64,000 bases of DNA from Orbicella franksi (lineage: Eukaryota). The translations under genes and the position numbers were made by a program. The stretch covers positions 31,620,001 to 31,684,000 of the forward strand of contig OZ116699.1 of the NCBI GenBank assembly GCA_964199315.1, in the 5' to 3' direction. Position 1 is the first letter of the stretch. Each line of letters starts with the position of its first letter. Of the stretch, positions 147 through 34,008 are shown piece after piece. The notes under the pieces were generated by a model that ran no database searches, was not told the DNA's origin, and was given only the letters and a program-made list of their open reading frames with translations.

Positions 147-988
147 AGAGTCTAGCAGTTCACTAAAGTGGAAGAACATCCTGGCATCTCTGTCGCAGCA
201 TTTTATGAACCCAAAGCCTTCCTTCAGTGATGCAACAACACCCTGATACAAACAAAGGGCTTTTTTAGATTAGCTTGACAAAATTAATATTGGCCATACA
301 TCAACAGTATTAAGATAACATGTACATGTACAATTGTAGCAACATATGAATTAATGATCAATTTTAATAAATCTCAATTAAAATTTCATGTGGCTGAATA
401 TTATATGCCAAGTTAGTTTGAGCTAATGCACCTAGCAGTTCTCCACTTCTGAAGTACATGACCTTTTGGGGGGCCTATGACTGCTATAACTGCTATAACT
501 AGGGCCCACACTTTGATGGTTGCTCTTTTTTGATATTCATTTATCCTTAGTAGTTTTATTACAAGTGGACAGCTGTATTGTTCACTTCCTAAATGGTGTT
601 CCTCTTTTCAGGTGACAAGTAAGTTTGTTTCTCACTCTTGAAGGGCAAGTATGAAGACTACACGTAGATTTGAAATCTGTAGAGAGGCATTCACCTAAGC
701 ACTCAATGATGTCAACCCATTGAAGTTATTTCTGACTTGTACCCATGTACCCTGTAGTAACCTCATGTGTTATATATTATATGTTATAGGAGACTATTGG
801 ATTACCATTTCTCTTGGCTCCCCGTCATCTGGTTCTGCTACATCAACCAAGCTGATTTGTGTAGCTCTCTTTAGTGAGTCGCGGCGATCTAAATAACAAT
901 GTAACATGAATATTACTGCAACATCACAATACACAGTTCATGAAATGAATAAGCTCAGAGAAACTTTACATCCATACAAGTCATACAA

Positions 989-1023
<35 letters not shown>

Positions 1024-4000
1024 TACAGAGATATACTTGTTGGGCACTGGGCAAACTGACTGCTGTGAGGACAATTTTGCCCACCTAGTTTGACCATCAA
1101 GCGGAAAGGTTTCTTTATAAAGAAGTTCAGTTCAAATACTTTTGCCGGCCTGTGAAAACCAGTTGCCCTCCTACTGAAAACCTTAATGGAACCTAGCTGC
1201 ATATTTTATTGCAACTCTCTAAAAAGGGTTTTCAGTTACAGGACTACATAATTAAATCACATGTATCATGTGTAATATAACTCAAAAAGGCACACATGTG
1301 ATGTAGGCTGCATGGTGTATTCAGCTATGATGAACAGGAAATGACCATTTGTAGTGCACACAATTCTCTCCACATTTTATGACTTACAAACATTGGATGC
1401 AGCAATCACAACCTACCCACTGCAATGTTGAATTCCACTACATCTCCAGCTCTGAGAGAAAAGTCTCCCTGCAAGTCTCGTTCAGAAAAGACAATCTCTT
1501 CCTCAACATCTTCATTATCAGGTGAAGTGAAGACTATTTTTCCATGCAGTGGATCATTTTGCCGTTTTGCAGCTGATTTACTCAAGGGCCGATCCACAGT
1601 TCCCTGATATCTCACACTGCTCACGTCTTCAAACTTCACAGTACCCTCAGGAAGTTTTTCCACATGTACTGCAACTTCTTTACCCTGCTTGGAAAGTGTA
1701 TCAAATTAGTTTGATAGCATCTGATGGTACAAAAAGAGTAGCTACATACTTTAAACCTGAAGCATAATCCATTGACCATACCTAGTGCCTTATTGGGGAT
1801 ACGGGTCAACAAGTCACAAGTATACAGTCACAAAAACATCAAAAAGAACGAACTACATGAAATTTTAATTACAATGTAAAATATGTTAGGACTACTGATA
1901 AAAGAAAAATTTAAACCAGATCACCTACATGTAAGCAAACTATAGTGCAGCAACATAAAACAACTAAATTTATATGTTAAAGTACTGAAACAGCTTGTGA
2001 GTGCTGGTACTACTCAGTCAAAAAAACTTTTATGTGAGGGATAGTCCTAATACTGTAGCTTTTCAACCTTGAACTGTAGGTAGTATTATTTATGGCAAGG
2101 GATAAATTGCATGTACATGTATATGTATATATACAATTACACAATTTCACACAACACAAAACACTGAGCCATACATTTCTTGCTTGTATCCCAAATTCCA
2201 CATCATCTCCTAGCATGAGCTCATTAATATTCCCTCTGAATTCACTGTAGTGGAAGAAGATCTACCAAAACAGAAAAACAACCATACTGTAAGAGTTAAA
2301 GGGGACGCGAAGCTTGGGTTAGGAGCAGATTTCAAACCTTGCAAAAGACGGCAAGACAGTTATTACTGTCAGAGTTTAAATTAATTGAAAGAGAAAGGCT
2401 ACATAAAAAGCTATGCACCAGTCACACACTTGTAAATTAATCTAAAAACTGACAAGAATGAGGAAAGCTGTGACCAAGGAAATATTGATCTATCAAAAAC
2501 ACGTCCAGGGCTTGAAAAAAAAACTTGAATTCCTGCTTGCCCTTTGTATGAGTAGCTCTCAAAGTTTGCTTGCCCTGGGTAAGTCTTAGTTTACTTTTCT
2601 TTCTATTTAGTTGGCAGACAACTTGGGCCCTGGGTCCTTGCCCTTTGGGCAAGTGAATATGAAAAGTTGCTTGCCCAAAGGTAACTCTACCTGTCCCGGA
2701 CAACTAGATGACACTTTTTTGAGCCCTGATACACTATACTGCCAACTTTACAGAACAAATAACAAGAGAAATGCCTCCCTCCATTTCAAGATTGACACTA
2801 AAAGGAATAAAATAAAATGAATCTTACCTCGCTAACTTTGTCTGCTCTCTCAATGAATCCAAATGATTCTTTCATTGATGAAACAACACCCTGTAACAAC
2901 AGATCAAAGATCACATATAGCTTATTATCTTTATTGATGCCCTGCCACTAAAGTTTAAGAGCACAAAATGTACATTGTAAACACTGCATAACAGTCCTTT
3001 GAACAACTGTCACTATCCTTTAAAGCTTGTTAGCCACAAAATCTGAAGTTGGGATGCAAATTGAAATGAGAAACAGTGAGGATAAATCAGTACTGTTAGG
3101 AAAAAAACAAACAAACAAATAATCCTACTTTGAAATGAGAAACAGTGAGGATAAATCAGCACTGTTAGGAAAAATACAAACAAACAAACAAATAACCCTA
3201 CTTTGACACTGACACAACATACCTGGCATTTCTCAGTATCTGCTGCCTCTAAAAGGGTAACTTCACGAGCTCGGATAACTCCAGTTCTTTAAGAACAAAA
3301 CTCAGATCAGCAACACAAAAAGATTATACATGTACATAATATTAGTCTGAGCAAGCAAACTGTATTTCGAACCCTGAGACAAATTAAAGCTATCATACAC
3401 ATCACCATAGTCCCAATTATTAGCAAATCTTAGGAAAATGATTTCCACGAAATAAATGGTTTTCAGTCATTTCACTTTTAAAGTAACTTTACACTGTAAC
3501 CGTTAAAAAATAAATTTCCAGGTGGACAAAAAGGTAACCCCCAATAAGGTAACAGTACAAGTTTATGTTAAGTTCAGTTTATGTTAAGTTATTGGAGCAT
3601 ACCTCTTATCAGTGGCTACATAAAATTCAACTTTGTCTCCCTTGTGGAGAGGTGTGCCAGAATTATTGACATCACTTGCAGAGAATGAGAGATAAAAGTA
3701 CTCCTGGAAAAAATAGAAAATATCACATTAGATCTGTTACAAAAAGAGACCAGGCTGTCTGGCAACCTGGATCAATTAAGTGAATTATTGCATTTATTTG
3801 TAACAGATATTTTAGAAAACTAAAGATCTTTTCTGTGTTGACTTACTCCATTTCTCTGATAGCTGACCCGTCCCATGTCAGGATCAACAAGTCCATTTGA
3901 TGGCTGAATGCAAAACAGATACAAATATATTATTGCACACATGTTATAATGCCTTATTATGAATTATAGAATATAACTGTCTTAAAAATGTTTTTTTTCC

Positions 4001-10722: not shown

Positions 10723-10866
10723 NNNNNNNNNNNNNNNNNNNNNNNNNNNNNNNNNNNNNNNNNNNNNNNNNNNNNNNNNNNNNNNNNNNNNNNNNNNNNN
10801 NNNNNNNNNNNNNNNNNNNNNNNNNNNNNNNNNNNNNNNNNNNNNNNNNNNNNNNNNNNNNNNNNN
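10723..10866. other. Assembly gap (144 N)
   Basis: Run of n. Confidence 1.
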
Positions 10867-16933: not shown

Positions 16934-19900
16934 CTACAATAATGTGCAGCGAAAAAACCCTCTGGATTGTTTAGGTTGTTGTGTGACATGGATTGTTGAT
17001 GTTGCTTGGGGACTTGATTGTTCCTGAAAAATTAAAAAATAAATAAATAGTGTATATAAATGTAACCACAGACATCTTAATTGATAATACAGTTGAACCT
17101 CTTGTAAGCGACCACCCAAAATGTCAAGCCTAGGCGGTCGCTTACGAGAGGTGGTGGCTTACAAGAACTTAGACCATATTGAGTCAAACTTTTGCCTTAT
17201 TTAAGACTGATCAATAGAGTACAGTATATGTGCATTTTTTTTCTTTAATTTTTTAACTGTGTTTCCTTGTGAAAAGCCAATTTCAAGAAAAAACTCCAGT
17301 TATTCCCATTTGAGAATTTCCATCTCTTAAACAACCCAGGAGTGCAACTCCTTATTATCCAATTTCTGCTCTATTATCTGTCAAATGGTTGTTTACCGGA
17401 GGTTAAAAACAAAAGAAAATTTCAAACTTTTAGCTCTAAAAGTGGCCACAGTCGCTTACAAGAGCAGGGCTCGACACTAACGGTAGCCAACTAGCCACAG
17501 ACTAGTAGAAATTTACAATGTAGTTTTGGCTAGTAGGTTTTTGCTTTCCGCTAGCCACTTTGGCTAATCAGCAATATAAAATTGGCTGAACTAGTTTGTC
17601 TTCCTCAAGGAAGACAAACACAAAATTTACACTTTTCTCGGAAACAATGTCAGAATTTCATTGTGGACACATCATGGTACAGTACCAGGCATGTGCTGTT
17701 CAGCATGTATGTCTACTCTTCGCTGTGTGGTATGTAAACAGGGAACTGTACATGTTAATCTTGTTGAAAGAAATATTTGACTAACAAGACAGCATTTTCT
17801 GAAAGCACACATCAATGCTCTTTTTTGTTACAAAATTTTTTTCACGTGCAAAATAGTGCGGAACTGTAAAGGGATAACATTTCACTTAGCGTAACAATAA
17901 ATGGGTGATTTGTCGTTGTATGCATACTTACGAACTTACCACTACAGAAATAATTAGATGTGAAAGATTTATTTCCTTCAACATTTAAACCAGCTGTTTT
18001 TAGCAGTCGAATTTTGCCAACGACAGTTTATAGTATTGTTCAGATTGTTGTTTTGCTTTTGAAACAATTCTACGGCACCTGTCTGCGAAGAAGTCTTGAC
18101 AGTTTTTACAGTGATGTCTTGGGGGTCTCGATATTTTTCCACGGAAGTGTCAGAGAAAAACAGTCCTGAAAGTCTTTTCGGGAACTAGAACTGTTTTGAA
18201 ACCAGTTTAAGTACAGTATAATTATCAACATTATGTATTAAAGAGAGTCGCTTGCATTGTGCTCTCAAGTCTTGCTAGTAATCCTGTTGTTACTGGACCT
18301 ACCTGAAATTTTCGCGACACATTAATTGGGTGGATTTCGCGATTTAAAACACATAATGTTACTGTTGACATATAGTACCGCCATTGCGTTTTACATTTTT
18401 ACTTTTGACATTATTGTACCTTTGATAAAGTCAGTTTACTAAATTCAAAGACATGTTTAAGTAACATTGCCAAGGAAATAAATTTTGTGTTACTCAAAAA
18501 CGCGAAGTTAAAGTGATTCAAAATACAAAATTTTAGCAAAACCGCTGAATTTAAGTGTCATGAAATATGCGTACCCCCAAATCGCAAAATAAACATGTTG
18601 CAAAAATTTAATGTAATAAGGTAGCCAACCACAATGTTTGGCTAGTGAAAGAAGGTTTTGGCTAGTAACATCTAAGTTAGCACTAGCCACTAGGCTAGTA
18701 AGTTGAAAAGTTAGTGTCGAGCCCTAGAGAGGTACTATAACGATACACTTGATTTTGGAAGAGAAACTTACCAGTTTCTTGTCCATTTTTAGTTTTATAT
18801 CTCTTGCAAGGGTGAAAAATGCCTGCAGATACAAAACAATTATCAGGTTATAAAATGGAAGTTCTTCATTGTACTTTCTGCAAAGGTTACTTTATTTAAA
18901 GCAACCTAATAACATAAACACTATGGCCTGTGACACTCACTTACCTCTTCTACATTGATACTAGCTTTTGCGCTTGTCTCCATGAATTTAATTCCATATT
19001 CTGTTGCCAACTGCAGCAAAGGAGACAAGACATGAAATACAGCCAAACAGTTATAATGTAGATGGACTAATGTAGATGTAGACTATAATGACATTTAGAT
19101 GTAACTTAACATTTGTATCCAGCTCTTAATGGATACAGTAGTGCAGGAACTACATGTATGTTCAATACCAGATCACTGTTAAGCTGACCCTGTACAGGAA
19201 ATGGACAGACAAGGAAAACATGGCAGTGTTTTCTAGTCTACAGGTCAAATGTCAGTACAAGCAAATTGCAAGAGAACATTAAGATTTTAGAAATTACTGA
19301 AGAACATTCCTTTACAAGTAACAGCATGGATTAGACTGTCTTAAATTAGAGTGTGCATTCCTGCAAGATATACGAGACCATTATTGCTGTTTCCCAAATG
19401 TTTACTTATAAAATAGGACACTAAAATCAAACAAACAACATAAGCTACATGTACTTACATGTCAAAATGGACAAGTTTACCTTGCTTCTCTCATTTGACA
19501 GGAAAAGGGAAAATCCGCTCACAAGATGTTTTTCACGGCAATTAATGCTGGACAACCATGTGCCTAACATGTGATGCTCTATTAATTGTTTATCATTTAA
19601 CTTTGGATCAACAAGCATGCAAGAGTTGTTTTTGTACATCTCATAGGTACAAGAAAGTTCACAAAATAAAACCTGGCTGTTTAGTTAAGCATACATGTAA
19701 CTTCTTCTTAGGGTTTCAACAATGCCACACAAACCATCCAAAATTATAAACTTCAGTGTACGCCACATGTAAGTCTACCTGTGTTCCTCTTTCTTTAGAC
19801 ACTGATCTTCTGTCCTCCATGTCACACTTGTTTCCCAGCACCATTTTCTCCACATCAGATGATGCATGCTGAACAGACCAATCAAGAGGCAAATTATCAA

Positions 19901-20006
19901 AAGTAAAGAAGTACACGGATGTTCGCATTGTTTCTAAGTAAGTTCCTAAAACAAAAACATCAACATTGCCTCAAACTTCCTTGTACCCCCGGGGGGAGGG
20001 GGGGGC

Positions 20007-20037
<31 letters not shown>

Positions 20038-22436
20038 CGCTGTGAAGGGTATGGTTTTCAAGCAGTTTACTCTAGGATAGGGTATATAAATCAGAGCGTT
20101 TGGGTCGACACCGCGGATATACGTTTTTTGGGGCGCGATACAGTATTTTGCTGGTCAGCGGTACACCCCAACAAAACTACAAAATGCCTGCAACTTTTAC
20201 ATTGTTTTCGCAGTGAGTCTTATCGACAGTCAAAAAGATACAAAACTTAGAGCGCACACTGTAAACTTAGCTTTTAAACTCCGCTCATTTGTTGGATAGT
20301 TCTCAGTTAATATTATATATTGTGCCAAAGCCAAACTGAACTTGCACATGGTGTGAAATTGTTGTTGTTTCGTGAGAGTTCATGCTCGCAAGCGGCGAGC
20401 CAGTGGCAATTTACGTTACGATGTGCGCTAAGGCTAAAACTAGGCAGCTTTTGTGCTGCTGTAACGGTGTTCTGAGGACATCAACTTCTCAAGTTTGTTG
20501 AATTGATGGGCTTGAACCGTATGAATCGGTATGTCAACGGCATTTCGATCAAATTCGTCGGGAAGACATGCTCGTGTTCGTCCTCTTGTTCGAACTAAAT
20601 GCAATAAATATTAATTTGTAAGAAATGTATCTGTTCTTTAATACATGCTTTTGTGTCTAGTATCTGAGTTAGATGTAGCCAAGATATATTACCAATGGTT
20701 TGTAGACAACAGTAAGCCAATTCAGAGACACAGTGGCATAAACAAACCCACTTGTTAGCCAATTTATCACAGGAAAAAAAAAATACATATAATAATATTA
20801 CACATATATAATTCATTGCCATCAGGTTCTATTATGTCTTGTAATAAAGTGGTTACAAGTTAAGTCAGAATCTTACAGAAGGGAGGATGATACAATACTA
20901 TTACTAAGGTGATCATAATTAATTTCATATTGATTCAAAGCACGTGATATGTACATGTATGATTACAATGTAAAAATTATTTTGTAGTGATTGTGCAAAG
21001 CTCATCTGAATTAAATTAAATGAAAGGAAAAACAACAACAGTCAATTATTTATTAAAGTTGATACAATGCACATGTAAGATAGAGAAATAGAAATCGAAA
21101 AGCTTCAAATGACTGACAAAATGACAAAATGACAAAATAAACTAGTGGGTTTCATTGAGGAGTTGATTACTGCCTCTCTGAAATGTTGAATGTCTTTTCA
21201 GCATCAAAAGTAGTGAAACTTGACCACATCCCATAAGTGGAAGCGGTTTCGTGTAAACAAATACAGGTGTTTGGGCATTTTAAAATATTTAGTTACATGT
21301 GCATACATGTACAGGGAAACGGTCTTGAAAATTTCCATGTGCTATCAACATTTAATTGATGGAAACAAAAAAGACCTCAAAAAAGGAAAAATTGTCAATG
21401 AACCGAAGATATTGAGCGGTCTTAAATGTTTTCAGTATTTCCAGCATTCGCTGCGGCCAACAAATTATAATATTTTCAATTTCTACTCCCTTCGCAAACG
21501 CCACCATTATATAAATGTAGGCTTAAACAATCTTTACTGAATGATAGAGAAATATCTTGTGAATGAAATGAACAAATGTTTTATTCTTACAGCAAACGGC
21601 AGGTACAAAAAAAATATTTCACCCGTTCCAAAAGGCGCAGAAAGTCAGAAAGGTGATAGAAAGGCCAAAACGCCAGTCTTTAAAGACAAATTCTTATCAA
21701 AGTTTCTTTGAAGCGTTGCGAAATATAATCTCAATGAAAGAGCACCATACGTCGGCGCAAAGTGAGTGTGAACAAAACGGTCCCGACTTACATGTACCTT
21801 AACCATTTCGTGCAAATTACACTTTAAATCCAACCAGTCTTCAAAATCCTTGCAAAAGCTGCACACAGGACAAATTTTCTGCTTTGCTGGATACCCATCG
21901 TTGATTTTCACAATTCTGAGGCGAGGGCGGCTGAAGCAACACGATCCACGCTTCGTCCGCTCGAGCTGGCTCGATTCAGCAAACTACACATTACTCCACA
22001 CAAAATGACTCCCCTGTACCGCTATTTTTTACGAACATTGCTTGAGTATTAAAAACCCATTTAAGGACGTCAAACTCACCAATAACGAGAACTATCAAGG
22101 ATATTTTCGACCTTAAACCGAAGCAAAATACCGATCTCAGAGACTGCTCGATCGAAGAACAGCACAGCCCGATGGTGATGACCACTGACCAGTTACTGTG
22201 ACGTCAGAAAACGTATTTCCGCGGTGTCGTTTGGGTCTAGAATAGGGTATCATTTTTCACAAAACTGACTGGTTGGTTGAAAATTTTATCTAGAGTAGGG
22301 AAACCAGAAATTGCCACTCAAAAATAGAACAAAATCAAATCAGCAAGTTTAAATTTATGCAAATCAGCCTCAGCAGTGTCAATAGATGGGGGGATTCGAG
22401 GATTTTACTCTAGTATAGGCTGGAAAAATTCAGCTG

Positions 22437-22467
<31 letters not shown>

Positions 22468-25400
22468 GGATGACAGCGGCATCCCCACCCAGAAATTCCC
22501 AAAGTACATCCCTGGGCTTGTACCCTGTAGGCTGTCCACAGCAAATACATTTTACAAAAGTCTATACCCACATAGGTGTTATTTGACAGTTCTTAAACTT
22601 TTAGCTATAATCTAAATGCACGTTAAAACCTAAATTAACAGTGCTCACCTCTTCAATATTTCTGATCCAGTTCTTGATATTCTCAAAGGATTTATCATTT
22701 GTGATGTCATACACAAGCATGATTCCCTAGTTATCAAAGCACAAAGTGTATGTAAATCAACATTCTTTGGCAATATTTTTTTAACTGACATAAAAATCAT
22801 CGCCAACTGATGAACTTAGGAAAGGTGCCCTACGGATGGTGGAGCCAAGATATGCGCCTCAAGCAGAGTATGCAAGTATCTATGGCAACCCTGAGAGTGG
22901 CAACCACCAGGCACTGCTACACTAACAGAGTCAGTGGAGATACTTACCACCACTTACCGTCGCCAGCGAAAGGGAGGGAGGTGAGGGAGCAAAAGCACTC
23001 AACAGGCATGAATGGCACTCAAAAGCAAACTACATGTTCTCACACAGCTGGCAAGTAAAACACGTAAGCCCTGCTTAACGCCCAAGTCGCTAGTGGAGGG
23101 AAGGTGCCTACAAAGCCTGGGGGCTGCAACTGCAGTCACATCCCCAAGGCGCTAGAACACCTGACTGGCCTGCCCAACCCGCAACTAAGCCACGAGCCCC
23201 CCGCGCCAAGCCCCCTACAGGCACCCATCACACTCAAGCCAGATGGCATTGGTGGAAAAAAAAAAATGCTGAAAAGAGGGGGGGAATAGGGAGGGAACGC
23301 CGAGAACTGCTAAACTATAATTCAATCCACAACGCCTCACTAACAGAGCGATGAACACACTGCGAGCACGTGGGACGACAACACACGTACTAACCAAAAA
23401 TACCACTGGACAATGTCAGCCCCAGGGCTCTCACGACCATATGACTGCTGCAAATGCTACAGAACGTACCAAATGCTAAAAAAAAGCTAACAGATGGCTA
23501 AGGCACTATCACACGCCTACAAAAAACGCTACTGACCAGACTAGCTCCTGGTCATAAACTATGTAAAATTTCACTGAACTATATCAAACGCTACAGAATG
23601 CACCAAACGCTAACCAAACGCTCACAGATGGCCAAGACACTAACAACCGCCTATAAAAACGCTACTTACCAGACTAGCTTCTAGTCGTTAACTATGTTAA
23701 ATTTCATTTAACCATATAAAACCCTGTATGAGACCCCACCGAGCATGATTGCCCTGATCGCTGGCCAGCATTGCCTCGACTCAAACTTCTCTTAAATTAC
23801 ATTTAGCCCCATAAAAATTTTTAAAGTTTACATTTGCCTTACCATTGCACCACGGTAGTAAGCGGTGGTGATGGTTCGGAACCTCTCCTGGCCAGCTGTG
23901 TCCCTAAAAGCCAAGAACATACATAATAACCCATCAGCTTCTACAGAAGTAAACTCTAATATCATGTGGTACAAGTTTTTGTGGCTACCAATGTAGATCA
24001 GAGTGTTTACTAGGGACAAACTCTCACGACCAAAATTACTTTCTCTGTTTTCTCTAAATACCAAATGAATAAAGGTTGTTGAGAAAAATGTATAAACCAT
24101 TAAGTAACAATATAGCCCAGAGATATTCTGGAAAAAGTGTGAACTAAATGTAAACTCCTGCTCATATTCAGAGTAATTGTACACAAAATTGTGTACATAA
24201 ACTATATGTTTTAGTGCCATGTTTATTCTTTAAGTCTAAAGCACTAGAATTTAACAAGATCAGCACTGAGCTGTGACCAATCAATGTAACAAAGAGAAGG
24301 TCTTGAATAACACACATTAATTCAGTCTCCTTTATTCCTTATGGTGGTACCATTTGTGGTTTATGCTAGTAACCTTTTTCTGTCAGGGACATTTAATATA
24401 ACTACAACTTACTGCACACAGTTTATGACAAAAAAAAATCCAATGATAATGGTGTCACGAATAGGGACTTTAACCAAGCTGGAGCCTCTTTGAACGTCCA
24501 AATCTATACTATGAAGTCCCAAAATGTTGTTTGCCCACCAGATAAGAGATGGATAAGGTTCAATTATCTGATGGACAAATCCACCAGCCTAAGATTATTT
24601 GTTAATCAAAGTATCTCTTTGTCTAAGAGGCCTGAGCAAAAGTGGTAATGCAGGTTTGTCACAAAGTTATCAATTACTGGTAAGTAGCTTTATCTTTTGG
24701 AGAAGGTGGCTGACATTGTAATTTTTTCTAATGATATGAGGAGGGGAGCAGGGGAGCAGGGATGGCGAAGTAGTGAGAACGCTCGCCTCCCACCAATGAG
24801 GCCTGGGTTCGATTCCAGCCCGGTGCCATGTGGGTCAATTTTGTTGTTGGTTCTTGCCTTGCTCCAAGGGTTTTTCTCCAGATTCTGCAGTTTTTCTACC
24901 TCCAAAAAAACTGATATCTCCAAATTCCAATTCAACCAGCATAAAGGACCCGCATGAAAACCAGCTGAGGCTGATGCAGCTTCCTCTCTAAATATTGTAA
25001 TTTTTTGTATTCATTCACTTATTTATTCATTCATTCATTTATTCTATTTAGGGCAACCTAGAAGAATAGCTGGCTAAGATCATAAAGCAGTAGATGGTGA
25101 TTTTCACTGGCAGCCACCTACTTTTGACAAACCTGGGTCATATGATAAAGTAATTAATTAGTGACAATCACATGCTTACTTCCCATCATTTCCAAAAATT
25201 ATCTTTAGTTAATGTGATAAGGAAGATGCTGGCACAGCACTGGCTTGACAGAGGCCATAAAGCTATGTAAGTACTTTAAGAGGTCTTTAAAGATAAATTC
25301 ATCATACATCTCATAATAATGTCCACCTTATTTATAATAATCAAGAAAAGTAAATTCAGGTCAGAAATAATACCTTGAAAGTGAAGATACAAGTCTCAAC

Positions 25401-26156
25401 CCTACTAATTTTAACAAGCTGTGTGGCAATTTCTACATAAAGTTCCTGTACACGCTCTTACTGATTTTCTTAGCTACAGAAAAATAGATCTGGAATGCAC
25501 GACATTTACAGCAGGTCTGACAATGGAGTTAAGTTACTTAGCGAATTGAAAACAACCACAAAATCGACAAAATGCTTGTTTAGGCAAATTACTAATGCCT
25601 ACATTGTATGTCTCATCCGTCAGACGTCTGCGGATTTTGAATTAAACCAAAGAATTCAACAAAAAGTTAGAGTCAATTCTAAGCGCTACAGGTAACATAG
25701 ATTCGGGATGAGCGGCTTTATAAGGAAAAGAGCAGTGCATTGGGTCATACAATGACAACAAAAATCTGCTTCGTTCTGGAGTGTGGAGTTGACAATCTAA
25801 TAACGCTTCATAGATGGGCAAGGAGAAATTTTACTCACCATATCTGAAGCTTTATCTTCTTTCCATCTAATTCTATTGTCCTTATTTTAAAATCAATGCC
25901 TGAAAGCCACAAAAAGAAGTGTTAAATGCCTTGACCTGACGAGACAGCTTGATCACACGAAGCCAGTTAAATTCTCCAGCAATTCACATAAAGCAACAGG
26001 CAAACTTTGCACGGCTTCTGAAGTTCACCGACCTATGGTGGAAATGAATGTGGAATTAAAGGCATCCTCGGAAAATCGGAACAACACACAAGTCTTGCCA
26101 ACGCCTGAATCTCCTATCAGTAATAATTTAAAGAGGAAATCATATGTCTTTGCCAT
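16934..26156 (-). CDS. RAB8: Ras-related protein Rab-8 (206 aa)
   Basis: 8 exons join in frame (621 nt): 26156-26033, 25899-25839, 23903-23843, 22726-22649, 19868-19779, 19010-18945, 18822-18772, 17023-16934. Translation [155 protein letters not shown] is near-identical to vertebrate RAB8A in the G domain and ends in a CAAX-type motif. Confidence 0.97.
17090..18738. mobile_element. Tc1/mariner-like MITE (TA|CAGTTGAACCTC) interrupted near its right end by a hAT-like element
   Basis: Left end ta|cagttgaacctcttgtaagcgacc. The right-end motif gtcgcttacaagag..gagaggtactata is split by the 17465-18726 insertion. The right terminus is degraded. Confidence 0.55.
17465..18726. mobile_element. hAT-like non-autonomous element (~1.26 kb) in Rab8 intron 7
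   Basis: 17-bp TIR (C/T)AGGGCTCGACACTAAC with subterminal (GG)CTAGT repeats at both ends. The TSD is not cleanly recoverable. A further cgcgac/cgcaaaa-type MITE remnant lies inside (~18300-18622). Confidence 0.7.
19988..22516. mobile_element. CCCGGGGG-type MITE split by the Mutator-like insertion
   Basis: Left half 19988-20106 and right half 22229-22516. Removing the insert restores the contiguous agagcgtttgggtctagaatagggtatc. Confidence 0.6.
20107..22228. mobile_element. Mutator (MULE)-like non-autonomous element, 2122 bp, in Rab8 intron 4
   Basis: Perfect 9-bp TSD GTTTGGGTC at 20098-20106 and 22229-22237. TIR GACACCGCGGA(T/A)ATACGTTTT. No intact transposase ORF. Confidence 0.85.
22850..23815 (+). 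repeat. Unclassified interspersed repeat with an internal 2x134-bp tandem duplication (23452-23719)
   Basis: Shares ggca(a/g)ccctg(a/t)gag(t/c)ggcaaccacca, cagtggagat and a terminal aaattacatttagcc with 29965-30302. The unit aaa(t/c)gctacagaa..cagatggc..accagactagct..aactatgt(a/t)aaatttca is repeated twice. Confidence 0.65.
24752..25045 (+). mobile_element. Full-length tRNA-derived SINE (V-SINE-like core) in Rab8 intron 2
   Basis: A box TGGCGAAGTAGTG, B box GGTTCGATTCC, core gggtttttctccagattctgcagtttttctacctcc, and an (ATTC/ATTT)n tail. Confidence 0.8.
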
Positions 26157-26367
26157 TCCAGAACAGTGCTAAAGTGAAAATCGTTGTTCCGTCTTTCCGA
26201 CTTTACGACTGTTGAACTGGGCAGGCGTGGCAAACAGACCCAAACTGCGCTTGCGCATTTCCAAACTCAGAGTAACCAGGCGTGAGGAACGTGCCAGTCT
26301 GGGACGAGTCTCCACTTCCGTACTCGGCTTTTTATATCCTGTGGATTGTTTGCAGCTTCGTTACGTT
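26157..26367. promoter_or_regulatory. Bidirectional promoter between Rab8 and the Rab8-like gene
   Basis: Only 211 bp separate the divergent ATGs. The region is CpG-rich and has an NRF1-like near-palindrome TGCGCTTGCGCA at 26246-26257. Confidence 0.8.
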
Positions 26368-29300
26368 ATGGGAGAGAAAGAGTACGAAGCAACATACAAA
26401 ATTCTTATTCTTGGGGATAGCGGTGTTGGAAAAACCTGTCTGATCTTTAGATTCATAGAGGATGTATTTTCTGACTCGTATATTTCAACGATTGGTAAGC
26501 TGTTTTGCAAGTCTAGCTAGTAGATTTTTCCGCTTTGAGCTAAAGCTGAGCTGAAATCACTTAAGACTAGAGCTTAACTTCTCCCAAAAATTTTGGGCGG
26601 CCATTCCCACCAATCGGTCAAAGAGACTTAAAGTTTGAACTTGGCCACGTGTAAACATCCAAAGTGAGAACAGAGATTGATCATAACAAAACTTGTATTG
26701 TAAATTTCTACGTCATTGTATCGGCTCGCGAGTTGAAGTGGACTCTAAAATAGCAAGCTAGAGAGGCTAATATTGTTTAGAGTAAGAGTGTAGTGTTTTC
26801 CCTATAAGCTTGTTGGTTGTTCTGGAGGTGTCCTCGCTTTGTCTATTTTCTTTTTCCGCTCAGAAACATTTTCACAGAAAAATTTGGCGTTTTCCATTCA
26901 CAAAAATATTTAGGCTCTTCTCTCGACCTGCACCTTTCAGCTTCAATACAACAACAACAATACTAGAAAGAACAATCTCCTACACAATATAAGCTCATTG
27001 TTTGTTAATTTTCTGTTTTCGTTTTCCAACTAGGAATATCGATCAGCTTGCAGCTTGATTTTCTTGATGTTTGTTTCAGAATTAGTTTGAATTCTTCTTG
27101 CAGAAATAGTCTCGCTAGAGCTCTAGACCGGAACAGATTTAAAATTAGATCCTCAAGTTTAAAGGTTAAGCTTACATGTTATGTTATTTATACTACAACA
27201 ATTAGAATTCTCGCTCTTATTTTCTATGAGGATAGTACCTCAACTCGGCTTAGAGTGCCACGTTGACTATCAGCTCAAAGAAAGGTCTAATTGTTGAATA
27301 GTGCATGACAGTTGACAGCCATACCTGTAAACAGAATGATAGACAACTTAAGGTTTGTAATACTAGTTTATTACCAGTGACAGAAGCATATCACCTTAAA
27401 GCGTTTAACCCTGGTGATAAGCCTCTGCCAGTGAGTATTAATGAAAAGACAAACAAATAATAAAATGATAGCATAGTGTACCATCAATTTCTTGTTGTTC
27501 AAGGTATTGACTGTAGAAGTCGAGTTGTAAATCTAGATGGAACAAAAGTGCGCCTCCAAATCTGGTAAGCTATTAAACACACAAGTTCTACTCATTAGTT
27601 CTAGTTATTAATTAATAATAGTCATGAAAGACTTCAAGACCGACATATTCACTATAGTACTCTTTCATGATCGATCAGCTTAGATCTATATGTTTTGACA
27701 TGTACTCCAAACTATCAGGTACAGCTTAGTGTGTCACATGTACAGGAATCAAAATGCTTCTCCCCTGAATAAATCCATGGATGCATTCTTTAACCCAAAG
27801 AAAGAAATCTCTAAAAACATTTTCATTAAATATTAAACAAGACGTGTTTCTTTGTTTTTGTTATTTACAGAATAAGACCTACAAGTAATTAATATTATAT
27901 GCATTTGCTTTTGATTGAAGGCTGCTGGGCACCTTATAAATTGTTGTAGGATACTGTTCTTAAACTTGCCTTTATTTCTGGCCAAGGCTCTTTTGATAGC
28001 TCTTATCACAGACTGAATTGATTAACCCAAAATCTTATGCTATACATGTACATGTATACAGTATGTACTCAGGGTTACAAATGTAACAAACTCTGGTGTT
28101 AAATGTCATGCTACAGTTATAACAATGTTAATTTTCTGTCATAATTACAGTGTTCCAGACTGTAAGTGAGGGGTCTCGGGTCAAAAACCTGCCAAGATCA
28201 GCTACATGAACCGAAAATATTACTACGAAATGTATAATGATTTGTTGGGTGCAGCTTGGGAACTGATCCACTGGAATTTCCTTTTTGACACCCTACCTTG
28301 AAAACTAATCTGGAACCCTGAATTGATGTCATGGGAAGGGCTCTGACGGTCTGAACTACCCACTTTCCTGTTCTCTTGCAACATATTTAATAATATATGC
28401 AAAACTGTGAATTTTTTTGTTTCCCCCAGACTTCTCACTCACTTTACCCCTGGCTCTCTATCCCCTTTTCCTCTCCTTTGCCCCCCACCCTTTTCCCCCT
28501 TGTGTTGTTATTTATGGGAGGTAGTACTGATCTGAGTCTATCTGTTTTTGGCCCCATCATTTAACATGCCTTCTGACTTGGATCTTTTTATGTGATGCTT
28601 ACAGTAAGACCTGGCAACTGCAGAAGCCCTGGCGAGTATTCGGAAATTTGTTTATTACAAGTGATATTAAAAAAAAAAAGTGTTAACAGTTTTAAAAATT
28701 AGTCTTTAAGAGGAGGTTGTTATGGACTCCTCTTATTGTTCTCGGACAGGTACTGGGCACACCAGGGCAGCTGTACCTGTACTTTCTTCAAATCTCATTG
28801 AAAGCACTGTACATGTTATCTTTTTGTCATAACCAGGGACACAGCTGGTCAGGAAAGGTTCAGAACTCTCACCAGTGCATATTACAGAGGAGCAATGGTA
28901 TCTATACCTTGTGTTGTTCCACAAAATGCCCAGACACCCAGTGGAAGGTTTTTTGGGTTAAGCCCTCCTGCTACACTGGAAATTTCTCCCCACTATCCTG
29001 AAAAAATTTCCAATGACCTTCCCTGGTATGCTGAGATATTTTCTGGCACTGCATCTTTACGTAGAACTTATAATTAGTGAGTGAATACACAGATATTGTG
29101 GAGATCTATAAATTGATAAAATGGCCATCCCAGCTGTAACTTGTTTATAAAACAACTTCACAGTGGCCAATTTGGACACTACAATGAAAAATATTGGTCA
29201 TTATAGAGAGGCCTGATGTGTTGCATGGTCCAATTAAGGACTGATGATTATTACTGGAAAATAGTTACATGTACTTTAATGGGAAGGTGATTCAGGCCCA

Positions 29301-32300
29301 TTGTTAAATTCAAAGTTTGCAACACACGTGTACTTTCCGTTCAAGTGATAATTAACTCTATATACGTGTATGCTTTTTGTCAATTTCAGGGTATTATTTT
29401 AGTGTATGACGTCACCACTGAGGATTCGTTTAAACACATAGCACAGTGGCTACAGAATATTCAGGATGTAAGTACATGTATAGCCAACAATTAACAGTTG
29501 TAAGTCCTATGGCAAATAAGCACAAGCATATTGAGCCAGTCAGAGGACACCTGAACTTATGCACACGTATGAGAACAACTGAGCAGATTAAACCTGTCTT
29601 TCTTCTTATGCCTGCATGAACATACATGTATGCTGTACTTTCATGTCACAGTGAGGATGCGGGTGGCATAAATCAAGCATACACTGTAAGTACAAGAAAG
29701 CCAACCAGTCTTAACTCCCTATGACCCAAACTTCTATTAAAATATTGCAAACACAATGTGACAGCTAGACTCCACCATATTGTTCAAGAACAACAATTGA
29801 TGAGGGTTGGTGTCAGTTCTCATCCTGAGAGCCACACATCTATTTGACTGGTAAGAATGAGCTGAGTCTAGTATGTCTCAGTCATGTATCTATTTTTCGA
29901 CAACTCAGATGGTTACATCTGACATTAAAATCATCAACAATAGATGAGGTTGGGGGTTGGTGCCTGGAAGGATGGTGGGACTGAGAGCATAGGGGCAAGC
30001 GCCAGGGTATCCCTGGCAGCCCTGTGAGCGGCAACCACCATCTGGCACCGTCACAATGACAATTCAGTGGAGATGAATTAATACTTACTAAGAGGAGAGG
30101 GGAAGGGAGGGACAGAACAGCACGAAAGCTAGCAAATGCAAGAACACAAGTGATTGCACAATGTCTCACAGAAACCAGAACTGTACAAAAGTCAAGCCCT
30201 GTCACTTACCGGGCAACCCCACGGCAGAGGTGAGCTGCCATGATGAGGACCACTACCTGCATTGTCTTGATTTTAACTATGCCTAAATTACATTTAGCCA
30301 CATTAAACTGAGAGCCTCACCTCACATCTCATGATGCTTTCTTTGCAGAATGCTTCACCGGATGTTTGTAAAGTTCTAGTGGGTAACAAGGTGGATGCTG
30401 AAGATGAGAGAGTCATAGAGAGTTCAAGAGGAAAATTAGTAAGATCAAATTTGTTTAGTACTTCAGAGTTCTCAGTGCATTAAATTTACAAATTGCCTGA
30501 CTACCTAATGTACTATCTAATTTTCTAACTGGAATGTGTGAATAGCAAGAGTGTTAATTTTTCTCTCTTTCTTTCAGATAACTGAAAATTCTGATTCAGA
30601 ACTAGAATTTTTTGAAACCAGTGCGCGGTCAGGAGAAAATGTGACAGAGGTGAGAAGAATATTAAGCGTTCCAAAATCTTTGCCACTTGGAACAAATACA
30701 TCCCATTCAGTGAAGATCTGCACTTTTATACTTCAGTAGATGTCAAAACTTCCTACCCTATTCCAGGGTCACTATGTCTCTGAAACTATTCCACTAACCA
30801 CAGTCAGTTGCTTGTAAAGTTGTCATAAAATGGTATGCATTGTCAATGCATCAATTAGTAAGGTTCTTTCAATTTCAAACTCAATTCCTAGTCTGGACTG
30901 AACTGATCATACCGACCTGACTGATCAGTTTCCTGGCATTAAATGACTCCCTGTTTCACAGAACCCCTTACTTTTAGCATCAGCACACTATTCCAGACTG
31001 ATCTACCAGAAAACCCTACCCAGTGACACATACTTGCACCCATATAGATGATAAATATCAATGCATGGAACTGCTCCCACGCTCCCACTTGGTTGCTAAT
31101 ATGTACTGTGGGTTTCCAGCTGCAGCTGAACATGGTATGGTATAGGGCAAAGGGCACAAACTCACCTGATTCTACACAGAGTACCATATCCTTTGTGGGT
31201 AGAGCAATCCCTGTGTTGTAAGCAAATTGATTTTGGCCTGATTAATTTGTAGTCAAATTATATCATGGCATCATTATGTCTCATTCTTATGTATTCCTCC
31301 CCGCACATCAAATTATGCAGCAATTTGTTTTTAATGCATTTAATCTGTAGTTTTAGGTGAAATATAAAATGTGTTACTTTCAGGCTTTTATGGCAGTTGC
31401 CAGGAAGATCAAAGAATTCAGGGAAAGAAAGGTCAGTTTATCAGTTACACTGCAAGGCTAAAACAAATCTTACTTAAGGTTACAGTATACCTTCAGGGGT
31501 GTCTCGCGCGCAGGCTATGTAGCGCGTGCAGTTTAAGCTGTAGATACCTAAACCCCTATATCAAATTAAAGCTTATGGAGCTTGCTATCAAACTATACCA
31601 AGAATTTTGAAAGAAAATGAATTGTCGAATTTTTCACGGCCACTAAATGCGAGCGCCCGAATCACCTTTCGAAAGCTACAAGTCAAAGCGAATTTCGTTT
31701 TTCGCCAATTTAATTTTTTCCTCGGTTTCAGGGCCCAAAGCGCTTAAAAAGCGTGTCTGCCTTTTGGCATATTCAATTGCAGTAAAAAGTTACAGAACAT
31801 TTTCGAAATAGAATTTAAAAAATGTGGAGTGATCGTACAAAAATCGCTCTCGAAGAAAAAGTATTTCGAAATTAACAATTCCCAGACACGCTTTTGTAGT
31901 TTATATGTTAAACTAGCCACTGTCCAAATTTAAGAGCAATTGAACAAATTCCCTTTGAGTTATAACTCTTTAAAGTGTCTGCTTCAAGTGAAAAAATTTA
32001 TTCGAGAAAACAGCGCTAAGAAAAATTTTCTGCTTCGCAAACAAACTCCGCCCACAAACGCCTTCAACTGGGTTCTCAGATAACTAAGCCAATCAGTGCA
32101 GGGAAAGTTTACTACCGTTGACCTCCTGGTGAAATTTACGCGTGAATCTCTAAAAAAACTCTTGTGTTTCGCAATGCGCTCAAGGAACCGAAGTCAGAGA
32201 GAGAATTTTTCTGTAGCTCGGTTTTTCTTGAAGCTGGTCTGGCAAAATGGGGAAGACTAAAAAGGATACGAACGCTAGAGTGGCTGAGCGAAGGAAACAA

Positions 32301-34008
32301 ACAAAAGAAAGCGCGGAGAGCAACTGTGTGTGGGCAACTGTGCATGAATAATATTTCAAATGGTCTCAATGAGTCCGACGATTCGTCGATATCGGACTCA
32401 TCAGAAGAGTCTCTGTCAGCATCCCTGTTATTGCTGTCAAGTTCCGATACTTTTACAGAACCTTTCTTTTCTCTTACCACAAATATTTGCCCGCCTTATA
32501 CGATAACTATAACTTCATCCGCGTGGCGAACTTTCGCTTCTTCACTCATTGATGTATTTTCATTCGTTCTTCGCTGTTTTCGCTTTTTCGAACTGGTCCA
32601 TGGTTTAAACGTGGCCTATGTTTACTTATAACTTAATAGAGACACGCCTAATATCAAAAATGCTGGGTAGTCAGAACAACAATGCTGATCAACTGAGTAG
32701 TCACTTCGTGAGATCCATACGGGTAATTCCCGCGAAAATCGTCTCGGTTGATTGCATGCGCGCCATAGGGCTGTCAATCAAGAGGTAAACTTTTACTTCC
32801 GGTGAAAACGTAAAACCGCCATTTCTCCGCCAATATTTAGCCTTTTTCAAAAATTTTTTTCAGAAGTTAGAGATTATTCTTCGACCACTATTTTGACCCA
32901 AAAATCCAAATTTGAAGAAAATTGCCGACCCGAAGGTATACTGTAACCTTAATGTAACATGTAAAAAATTTCTCCACGAGCTCCAAGCGCAGGACCATCT
33001 GACTTTTGAGGGGGTGTGTGGGTGATTTTGAAAAAAAATATCCTGCAAGAATGCTTGTACCCAGAAAAATTCATGAACATGAACACTGCCAAAAAAAAAA
33101 CCAAATCCTTCAGTGAGCCGGAAAAAGGGCTCCATGTTACAGAGAAAAAAGATGCCATGCGTACACACATCTTGAGCAAAAAAATTTCTAGTACACGAAA
33201 AGTCAAATGTCCCACCCCTTATTACTCAGTTAACTTAATAATTGTTGTGCTTTGTTTGCCTGTCACGTAGAATTTAGATGAAAATTGTTAAGTAACACAA
33301 ATTTATCGTAAGTAAATTATACAGCAAAAAGTAATTTTAATGATAATAAAACATAAAATTATGCAATTATATTTTTCACCTGCTATGGTAGTAAAAAATA
33401 AAAATGTTTAAGGTTCTGTTGTCTGCTGTGTAATTATACGCCGAGTTGAATTAAATACATTTGTCACTTTGGTAACTCCAGGGTTGCAAAACAACTTTTT
33501 AATAAATTATTTAAGTGGTTTGAACCCAGGAGTTACACTGTAAATAATGAGTAGTTCGTCATGTGTGATCGTCCAGTGAGGGTAGTTCTGAAAAGAACTG
33601 TTTTTGGTGACTGACGTTTCTGAGCTGAGCAGAAGTTATTTTCAAAGTCAAATGAAAATGCTTTGTCCGGCGATGGTGTCATAAGACTGATTGGTCAGTT
33701 TAGCCGTGATGGCATTGGCTGTAAGACTCGTGTGTAAAGTTTTTTAACAGTCACTGGTCATAATATCAGTCCAATTGAGTTTCAACCACTCTCGTGGTAC
33801 AACTCTCTGAAAGTTGTGGCCCGTCTTATTCTCAAAATTCTTGAAACAGGATCTTCTGTTTTTTAATCGTTAAGGTAAAATGATCCAAGTTGTGTTCTCA
33901 CTTGATTTCCAGGGTGCAAGGTTTGCTTATCAAGATGGCCTTAATCCCGTACTTGAATCAGAACAGCAACAAGAAAATTCTCACTCCGCTGCTTGTTGCA
34001 GTTCGTGA
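26368..34008 (+). CDS. Divergent Rab8-family small GTPase (210 aa), C-terminal CCSS
   Basis: 8 exons join in frame (633 nt): 26368-26494, 27504-27564, 28837-28897, 29390-29467, 30349-30438, 30578-30649, 31384-31431, 33913-34008. Translation [211 protein letters not shown]1-G5 boxes are present. Confidence 0.93.
29965..30302 (+). repeat. Shorter relative of the 22850-23815 repeat, in intron 4 of the Rab8-like gene
   Basis: Shared motifs ggcagccctgtgagcggcaaccacca, cagtggagat, gcattgtcttga and aaattacatttagcc. Confidence 0.6.
31478..32948. mobile_element. Kolobok-type element, 1471 bp, in intron 7 of the Rab8-like gene, with a decayed acidic ORF
   Basis: TTAA at 31474-31477 and 32949-32952. 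Perfect 17-bp TIR GGTTACAGTATACCTTC. Minus-strand relic [45 protein letters not shown]. Confidence 0.85.

Follow-up and report, generated by a model that had tools for sequence, protein, structure and literature searches.

Head-to-head arrangement of the Rab8 and RabX4 genes on a 211-bp intergenic region in the stony coral Orbicella franksi

Introduction

In a 64,000-nt stretch of the Orbicella franksi genome (contig OZ116699.1, positions 31,620,001 to 31,684,000; assembly GCA_964199315.1), referred to below as the window, two Rab GTPase genes diverge from start codons separated by only 211 bp. This raises the question of how two related small GTPases came to lie on one compact intergenic region, and whether the second gene is a coral-specific partner of the first. 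A previous interpretation made from the letters of the window (the sequence-only reading) regarded the pair as an old inverted duplication of Rab8 that gave rise to a canonical and a modified, lineage-specific Rab8 protein. The analysis described here favours a different origin, in which the orthologues of Rab8 and of RabX4 were paired by a rearrangement in stony corals on the ancestral Rab8 promoter. For this interpretation as a whole a probability of roughly 70% was estimated. The head-to-head arrangement looks like a new, coral-specific placement of known families.

Results and discussion

Structure of the divergent gene pair

Both gene models were rebuilt from the genomic sequence, with the flanks translated. 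This yielded two complete Rab genes, each made up of eight coding exons, and a GT..AG pair was found at every internal splice site of both. The following features were defined:

16934..26156, minus strand: Rab8 gene (span of the coding sequence); 206 amino acids, CAAX-type end CTLL; sequence model and RNA-seq
26156-26033, 25899-25839, 23903-23843, 22726-22649, 19868-19779, 19010-18945, 18822-18772, 17023-16934, minus strand: Rab8 coding exons
26368..34008, plus strand: RabX4 orthologue (public name "Rab-8B-like"); 210 amino acids, double-Cys end CCSS; sequence model and RNA-seq
26368-26494, 27504-27564, 28837-28897, 29390-29467, 30349-30438, 30578-30649, 31384-31431, 33913-34008, plus strand: coding exons of the RabX4 orthologue
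26157..26367: intergenic region between the two start codons, 211 bp, with both 5′ untranslated regions (UTRs) and the putative divergent promoter

The rebuilt models, together with the spliced reads described below, confirm the divergent arrangement with start codons at 26156 (minus) and 26368 (plus) that the sequence-only reading had proposed. Its lengths of 61, 61, 78 and 90 nt for exons 2 to 5 were likewise recovered in both genes. All seven introns had been said to share position and phase; this holds for introns 1 to 6 in the alignment, whereas intron 7 is shifted by one codon (exon 7 measures 51 nt in Rab8 and 48 nt in the plus gene). The two proteins are identical in 50% of their residues over the full length and in 56% within the G domain.

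The plus-gene model differs from the annotated Orbicella faveolata protein P0152 in a single residue (V91I) and is thereby validated. The gene is present as a single copy in the O. franksi genome. Its product retains all G motifs (P-loop, DTAGQE, NKxD and ETSA; G1-G5 intact), carries the C-terminal prenylation motif CCSS and is matched by the Pfam Ras model with 203 bits.

Transcription, splicing and 5′ ends

Raw reads of polyA RNA-seq from two samples (X23 and X24, bulk and unstranded library) were aligned to positions 23700-29500; from a further run (X21) only one read aligned to the region. The numbers of reads spanning introns were as follows:

Rab8 intron 1: 50 (X23) and 57 (X24)
Rab8 intron 2: 40 (X23) and 39 (X24)
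Plus-gene intron 1: 6 (X23) and 22 (X24)
Plus-gene intron 3: 7 (X23) and 9 (X24)

Moreover, loose read ends at 27565 and 29467 match the sequence of the exons that come next in the plus gene, 3 and 5. Both genes are transcribed and spliced, and a silent plus gene, which the sequence-only reading had named as a possible outcome, is excluded by the spliced reads in both samples. With ATGs 211 bp apart and spliced reads from either side, the two genes form a divergent pair in the sense of less than 1 kb between starts and transcription of both.

In the reads of X23 and X24, neither first exon was seen joined to a non-coding exon further upstream. Reads cross position 26194 on the Rab8 side and positions 26344 and 26355 on the RabX4 side. 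Because of these crossing reads and the lack of upstream joints, both 5′ UTRs are placed within the 211 bp, in agreement with the earlier expectation. No pile-up of read starts was reported in the unstranded library, and the transcription start sites (TSSs) are bracketed only: that of Rab8 would lie near 26195-26225 and that of RabX4 upstream of 26344.

Some irregularities were observed in the RNA data of this region. An RNA contig from X7 departs from the window at 26190, and its 30 loose bases match nothing in the window; they may represent an alternative Rab8 leader, another allele or Orbicella species, or a chimera. In a T-run at 26194, a 1-nt length variant occurs in some reads. At 26344, 26355, 28855 and 29411, the RNA-seq samples carry fixed differences from the assembly, and the one at 29411 (G>A) leads to V91I in agreement with the public O. 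faveolata protein. Owing to these fixed differences, the RNA samples and the assembly are regarded as different genotypes or sister species.

Identity of the two Rab GTPases

The minus-strand gene is an orthodox coral Rab8 orthologue, whose protein shares 96% of residues with its counterpart in Montipora, 89% with that in Nematostella and 82% with bat Rab8A. With its CAAX-type end it is a full member of the Rab8A/B group (Sec4/Ypt2 lineage).

For the plus-strand gene, a search of a representative library with exon 1 returned mostly exon-1 fragments, one of which (P0007) led to full-length orthologues; P0152 then served as the query, and one further record was used as isoform X1 (P0278). Full-length orthologues were found in stony corals (Desmophyllum, Orbicella, Montipora, Acropora and Porites) and in sea anemones (Nematostella and Exaiptasia). 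The full-length search also matched octocoral, hydrozoan and scyphozoan proteins and, in a large group, arthropod proteins; among the latter, two are named RabX4 and most of the others "Rab-8A". Several motifs are common to the plus-gene protein and RabX4 and differ from Rab8, namely ATYK[IV]L, RFRTLT, [DE]NASPDV.KVLVGNK, FFE and ARKI.E.RER.

RabX4 (Drosophila CG31118-type) was defined as a subfamily that arose as a metazoan duplicate of Rab8; it is present in insects, Amphimedon, Nematostella and sea urchin and has been lost in vertebrates (Kloepper et al., 2012; PMC3425129). Two maximum-likelihood (ML) trees were calculated with IQ-TREE under the site-heterogeneous model LG+C20 with posterior mean site frequencies (PMSF). 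In the first tree, the coral plus-gene protein forms a clade with cnidarian, sponge-like and arthropod RabX4 sequences (support 99/97), while Rab8 and the coral Rab10-like, Rab15-like, Rab3-like and Rab27-like genes fall outside. In the second tree, to which 10 cnidarian Rab8 proteins were added, the RabX4 clade is recovered with 100/100 (stem 0.97), and the metazoan Rab8 clade (96/87) includes the minus gene and excludes the plus gene. Two imperfect gene models from a cluster on C3 were used in neither tree, and an imperfect Rab27-like model in the first tree only.

Judged from its sequence, the plus gene is no copy of Rab8 but represents, in corals, the orthologue of RabX4, a family that is old and animal-wide. 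The sequence-only reading had itself named a grouping with an ancient separate subfamily (Rab15, for example) among the results that would speak against it; the gene does group with one, namely RabX4. Its description as a modified Rab8 and as a lineage-specific "Rab8-like" partner does not agree with the position of the protein in the two trees.

The view that the pair originated from an inverted duplication of Rab8 within cnidarians or corals, with one copy diverging rapidly into a lineage-specific partner Rab, could appeal to the adjacency of the genes, to their common introns and to the search of the PDB, in which human Rab8A is the top match of the plus-gene protein (212 bits; Rab10 202, Rab1 197). 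However, an approximately unbiased (AU) test rejected a single clade of cnidarian RabX4-like and cnidarian Rab8 proteins (delta lnL 79, p 7.7e-25), orthologues occur in arthropods, jellyfish, hydroids and octocorals, and the genes are not adjacent in anemones. The introns do not discriminate either. When paralogues from the same coral genome were modelled for their exon structure, a Rab10-like gene (C12) showed exons of ..., 61, 61, 78 and 90 nt followed by a fused last exon, and a Rab15-like gene (C4) showed exons of 124, 61, 61, 78, 90 and 66 nt as in Rab8. The 61/61/78/90 pattern is therefore no specific mark of a Rab8 duplicate, although it had been taken as such ("RAB8 pattern"); it appears to belong to the whole Rab8-derived group. 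Taken together, a duplication within cnidarians is considered highly improbable.

A further possibility is that the cnidarian clade represents an independent, fast-evolving family of the Rab8 group that was joined to arthropod RabX4 by long-branch attraction. The stems are indeed long (0.64-1.1), the identity of 51-56% to RabX4 does not exceed the 56% to Rab8 in the G domain, and the C-terminus is CC, CCX or CCXX in cnidarians compared to CXC in most arthropod sequences. On the other hand, the clade still obtains 100/100 under the site-heterogeneous LG+C20 PMSF model, several short derived motifs are held in common, including the tail RER[KR]..F, and an independent study placed a Nematostella protein in RabX4 (PMC3425129). 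Such an artefact is regarded as improbable.

The plus gene resembles RabX4 in its ML clade, its derivation from Rab8, its intact G1-G5 motifs, its prenylatable double-Cys C-terminus and the motifs ENASPDV.KVLVGNK and ARKI.E.RER. It differs from arthropod RabX4 by an identity of only 51-54%, by IGIDC in place of IGIDF and by its end CCSS instead of the CXC seen in most arthropod copies. Its likeness to Rab8 consists of the intron positions and about 56% of the G-domain residues; unlike Rab8, it stands outside the Rab8 clade, lacks a CAAX box and evolves faster.

This faster evolution is also seen between species. Between coral and Nematostella, RabX4 is 74% identical, compared to the 89% found for Rab8, which bears out the earlier statement that one copy stayed nearly invariant while the other diverged. 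Identities of 51-60% were found for the orthologues of the plus-gene protein in arthropods, jellyfish, hydroids and octocorals; the coral-bat value for Rab8 is the 82% given above. The divergence of RabX4 is spread across its whole history and is no coral event.

The Phe of the RabF1 motif IGIDF, which belongs to a conserved hydrophobic triad, is replaced by Cys (IGIDC) in anthozoan RabX4 (exon 2, 27504-27564) and by Ser in the medusozoan copies, and is kept in arthropod RabX4. The loss of this residue in cnidarian RabX4 could alter effector binding.

In public records, cnidarian RabX4 is filed under Rab-8B-like, Rab-13-like, ypt2 or Rab-1. The assignment made here corrects the names "Rab-8B-like", "Rab-13-like" and "ypt2" for the coral gene as well as "Rab-8A" for arthropod RabX4, and it does away with the notion that corals have a partner Rab of their own. 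In the literature, no paper linking RabX4 with corals was found.

Gene order in other cnidarians

The positions of Rab8 and RabX4 in other cnidarian genomes were as follows:

Porites lutea: head-to-head pair with 205 bp between the start codons of Rab8 and RabX4; a PRDM gene follows downstream, as it does in the window
Nematostella (OW051987.1): Rab8 (plus strand, 5956143-5959196), WD40 gene, CSDE1, RabX4 (minus strand, 5981777-5986198); 22.6 kb, convergent (tail to tail)
Exaiptasia: Rab8 absent from the 10 kb that precede RabX4
Hydractinia: both genes on the same chromosome, about 575 kb apart
Xenia: both genes on the same scaffold, about 5 Mb apart
Dendronephthya and Rhopilema: no partner gene within the flanks read

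For Acropora, the record P0163 is a transcript contig of 901 nt and so carries no synteny information. Within the flanks read, the head-to-head adjacency is absent in Nematostella, Exaiptasia, Dendronephthya, Xenia, Hydractinia and Rhopilema. A check of its conservation, proposed with the sequence-only reading, accordingly gave the arrangement in Porites and in none of the genomes examined outside the stony corals. As the layout is not kept there, an inverted duplication in situ is unlikely and a later local rearrangement is favoured.

One of the two genes that separate the Rabs in Nematostella is also present in the window:

about 147-3930, minus strand: exons of a CSDE1 (cold-shock domain E1) homologue, with Pfam CSD and CSDE1 matches on single exons

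The coral CSDE1 gene extends beyond the start of the window, lies downstream of Rab8 on the same strand and is collinear with the CSDE1 gene located between Rab8 and RabX4 in Nematostella. A run of 144 Ns (10723-10866) separates it from Rab8, and a homologue of the Nematostella WD40 gene was not found in the window. Relative to the Rab8 > CSDE1 block, RabX4 lies on the same strand in coral and anemone and on opposite sides.

In both anemones, Nematostella and Exaiptasia, it is instead an Anthrone_oxy gene that RabX4 faces head to head. Three copies of Anthrone_oxy are found in the coral on the same chromosome, 234 kb away (G000:C2:31888105-31893180). Tropomodulin adjoins Rab8 in Hydractinia, lies near RabX4 in two octocorals and is 0.38 Mb off in the coral.

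These gene orders suggest an old shared neighbourhood with convergent orientation and an origin of the head-to-head state in stony corals. RabX4 was derived from Rab8 before the split of cnidarians and bilaterians and lost in vertebrates, which lack it (PMC3425129). All cnidarians sampled still carry the two genes on a single chromosome, with close linkage in Hexacorallia. According to this model, the ancestral-type order would have been that of Nematostella (Rab8 > WD40 > CSDE1 > < RabX4). In the stony-coral lineage, a local rearrangement may then have shifted RabX4 from the far side of CSDE1 to a place directly upstream of Rab8. With the strand of RabX4 unchanged, the two 5′ ends would have come to face each other at a distance of about 0.2 kb.

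Alternatively, RabX4 could have been created by an inverted duplication that left the two genes head to head from the outset, an arrangement kept in stony corals and broken in sea anemones, octocorals, hydrozoans and other lineages. That two paralogues should land 0.2 kb apart by a later rearrangement is a priori unlikely, and the genes are linked in all cnidarians sampled; the Sanderia gene models for Rab8 and the RabX4-like gene are numbered 6518 and 6522, which hints at near neighbours. Nevertheless, at least three independent breaks would be required, the orientation in Nematostella is convergent, and the orders of Hydractinia (Rab8, Tropomodulin) and the octocorals (RabX4, DPP-like gene, Tropomodulin) combine to a convergent order as well. 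Furthermore, the two anemones have the other head-to-head partner described above. An ancestral pair is thus rather unlikely, and the rearrangement in stony corals is preferred. Of the "old inverted duplication", the old duplication stands; its inverted origin in situ is made unlikely by the convergent genes of Nematostella and by the distances of 0.6 and 5 Mb in Hydractinia and Xenia.

In the anemones, the gaps between the coding ends of RabX4 and the Anthrone_oxy (DUF1772) gene measure 252 and 368 bp (L017 9389-10001, L014 9156-10001), and RabX4 is thus part of a compact divergent pair there too, with another partner.

The intergenic region and the Rab8 promoter module

The 211-bp region has a CpG observed/expected ratio of 1.07 and a GC content of 0.50, compared to 0.5-0.6 and 0.39 in the flanking gene bodies. 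Three elements were distinguished:

26247..26256: NRF1-like palindrome GCGCTTGCGC (GCGCAAGCGC when read in Rab8 sense), located 100 nt upstream of the start codon of Rab8
26214..26231, minus strand: conserved Rab8 promoter box GCCACGCCTGCCCAGTTC (Rab8 sense; also written GCCACGCCTGCCCA or GCCACGCC), just downstream of the palindrome
26314..26320, plus strand: ACTTCCG, a tentative ETS-core-like motif with the TTCCG core kept in the alignment of Orbicella and Porites

The palindrome corresponds to the NRF1 core with one mismatch in the centre. It is the only match to GCGCNNGCGC in the 64 kb (0.05 expected), so that the NRF1-like palindrome reported earlier for this region could be verified. The same applies to the general description of two paralogous Rab8-group genes on a very short, CpG-rich, NRF1-type intergenic region.

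The region and its 205-bp counterpart in Porites lutea show a mean column identity of about 80% in an alignment of 296 columns that includes the coding flanks. For a wider comparison, 260 nt upstream of Rab8 were aligned in six species. In Orbicella, Porites and Nematostella, the palindrome and the GCCACGCCTGCCCA that follows it occupy -60 to -100 relative to the Rab8 ATG. A perfect GCGCATGCGC is located at -91 of Nematostella Rab8 and at -80 of Xenia Rab8, and the Porites sequence is GCGCAGACGC. The counterparts of the box are GCCACGCCTGCTCAGTTG in Porites, GCCACGCCTGCCCAATTC in Nematostella and the diverged ACCACACCTG in Xenia, all at -60 to -75 of the Rab8 ATG.

The palindrome is kept in Nematostella and Xenia even though RabX4 does not adjoin Rab8 on the upstream side there, and the upstream region of Nematostella RabX4 is devoid of the palindrome/box module. 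Since the module is kept upstream of Rab8 whether or not RabX4 adjoins, the intergenic region is regarded as the ancestral Rab8 core promoter. In the proposed rearrangement, this CpG-rich anthozoan promoter with its palindrome and GCCACGCCTGCCCA box would have been retained, and RabX4 would start just beyond it. Orbicella and Porites agree less in the half next to RabX4, where the CCAGTCTGG block and the TTCCG core are kept; the latter may belong to an ETS-type site. In corals, transcription of RabX4 may depend on the Rab8 promoter elements, in which case the region would act as a true bidirectional promoter.

Several points weigh against the interpretation as a whole. Shared use of the promoter, like the co-regulation proposed earlier, is putative; the RNA library is unstranded, and the ratio of Rab8 to RabX4 junction reads was about 8:1 in one sample and 2.6:1 in the other, a threefold difference (n = 2 samples). 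The group constrained in the AU test was named only after the tree had been seen, and the reference set of the trees was without vertebrate Rab13, Rab12 and Rab15. Long branches lead to both RabX4 and the cnidarian clade, so that some attraction is possible. The plus-gene protein scores 223 bits against beetle RabX4 and 207 bits against the neighbouring Rab8, which is a slight edge, and its G-domain identity is 56% to either. The labels "Rab10-like" and "Rab15-like" are our own reading of the sequences, and in the PDB search with exon 1 of the Rab10-like gene, Rab8A and Rab10 were tied. Finally, the polarity of the rearrangement is based on two anemones, two octocorals and one hydrozoan.

Comparison with known promoters and implications

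CpG-rich bidirectional promoters with NRF1- and ETS-type sites are a class described in mammals. The coral pair is similar to this class in its CpG observed/expected ratio of about 1, its near-consensus NRF1 palindrome, its ETS-like core and the expression of both genes. In contrast to the mammalian class, the coral partners are ancient paralogues, the promoter is traceable to Rab8 before the pairing, and the bidirectional activity is putative.

In the fly, RabX4 is enriched in the nervous system and synaptic, and nulls show reduced viability (PMC8016483). It is conceivable, as a tentative scenario, that Rab8 and RabX4 have shared one small neighbourhood ever since RabX4 arose by local duplication in the earliest animals. 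Their linkage would then be over 600 million years old and still discernible across Cnidaria, and stony corals would have placed RabX4, which is neuron-type, at the ancestral housekeeping promoter of Rab8 with its NRF1-type site. If this were true, the place and timing of RabX4 expression would have changed compared to sea anemones, and the locus would show, as a natural experiment, how one ancient paralogue captures the promoter of another. As to the symbiosome biology raised in the sequence-only reading, no link of the pair to symbiosis was found, and no test aimed at one was made.

Both major clades of stony corals have the pair, and sea anemones lack it. The arrangement is a dated example of two ancient paralogues on one compact promoter whose origin can be traced to one partner, and it raises the question whether RabX4 expression in corals, compared to anemones, was changed by the new promoter position. 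The result itself is a modest one, a misnamed known family in a new arrangement, and its value lies mainly in the correction of the annotation and in the question of promoter capture.

Further Rab genes of the coral genome

The cluster on C3 mentioned above is a tandem trio of Rab8/Rab10-like genes (G000:C3:33259000-33267150; loci L020 and L028) with two to three coding exons and the G4 motif "ANKCD"; two of the three gene models are incomplete. The trio looks like a coral-side expansion with intron loss. In addition, two intronless Rab open reading frames were identified, L006 (G000:C1:38834643-38837756) and L008 (G000:C1:37078919-37082038). One of them is Rab1-like and one Rab8-group-like, and both form long branches in the trees; they may be retrogenes.

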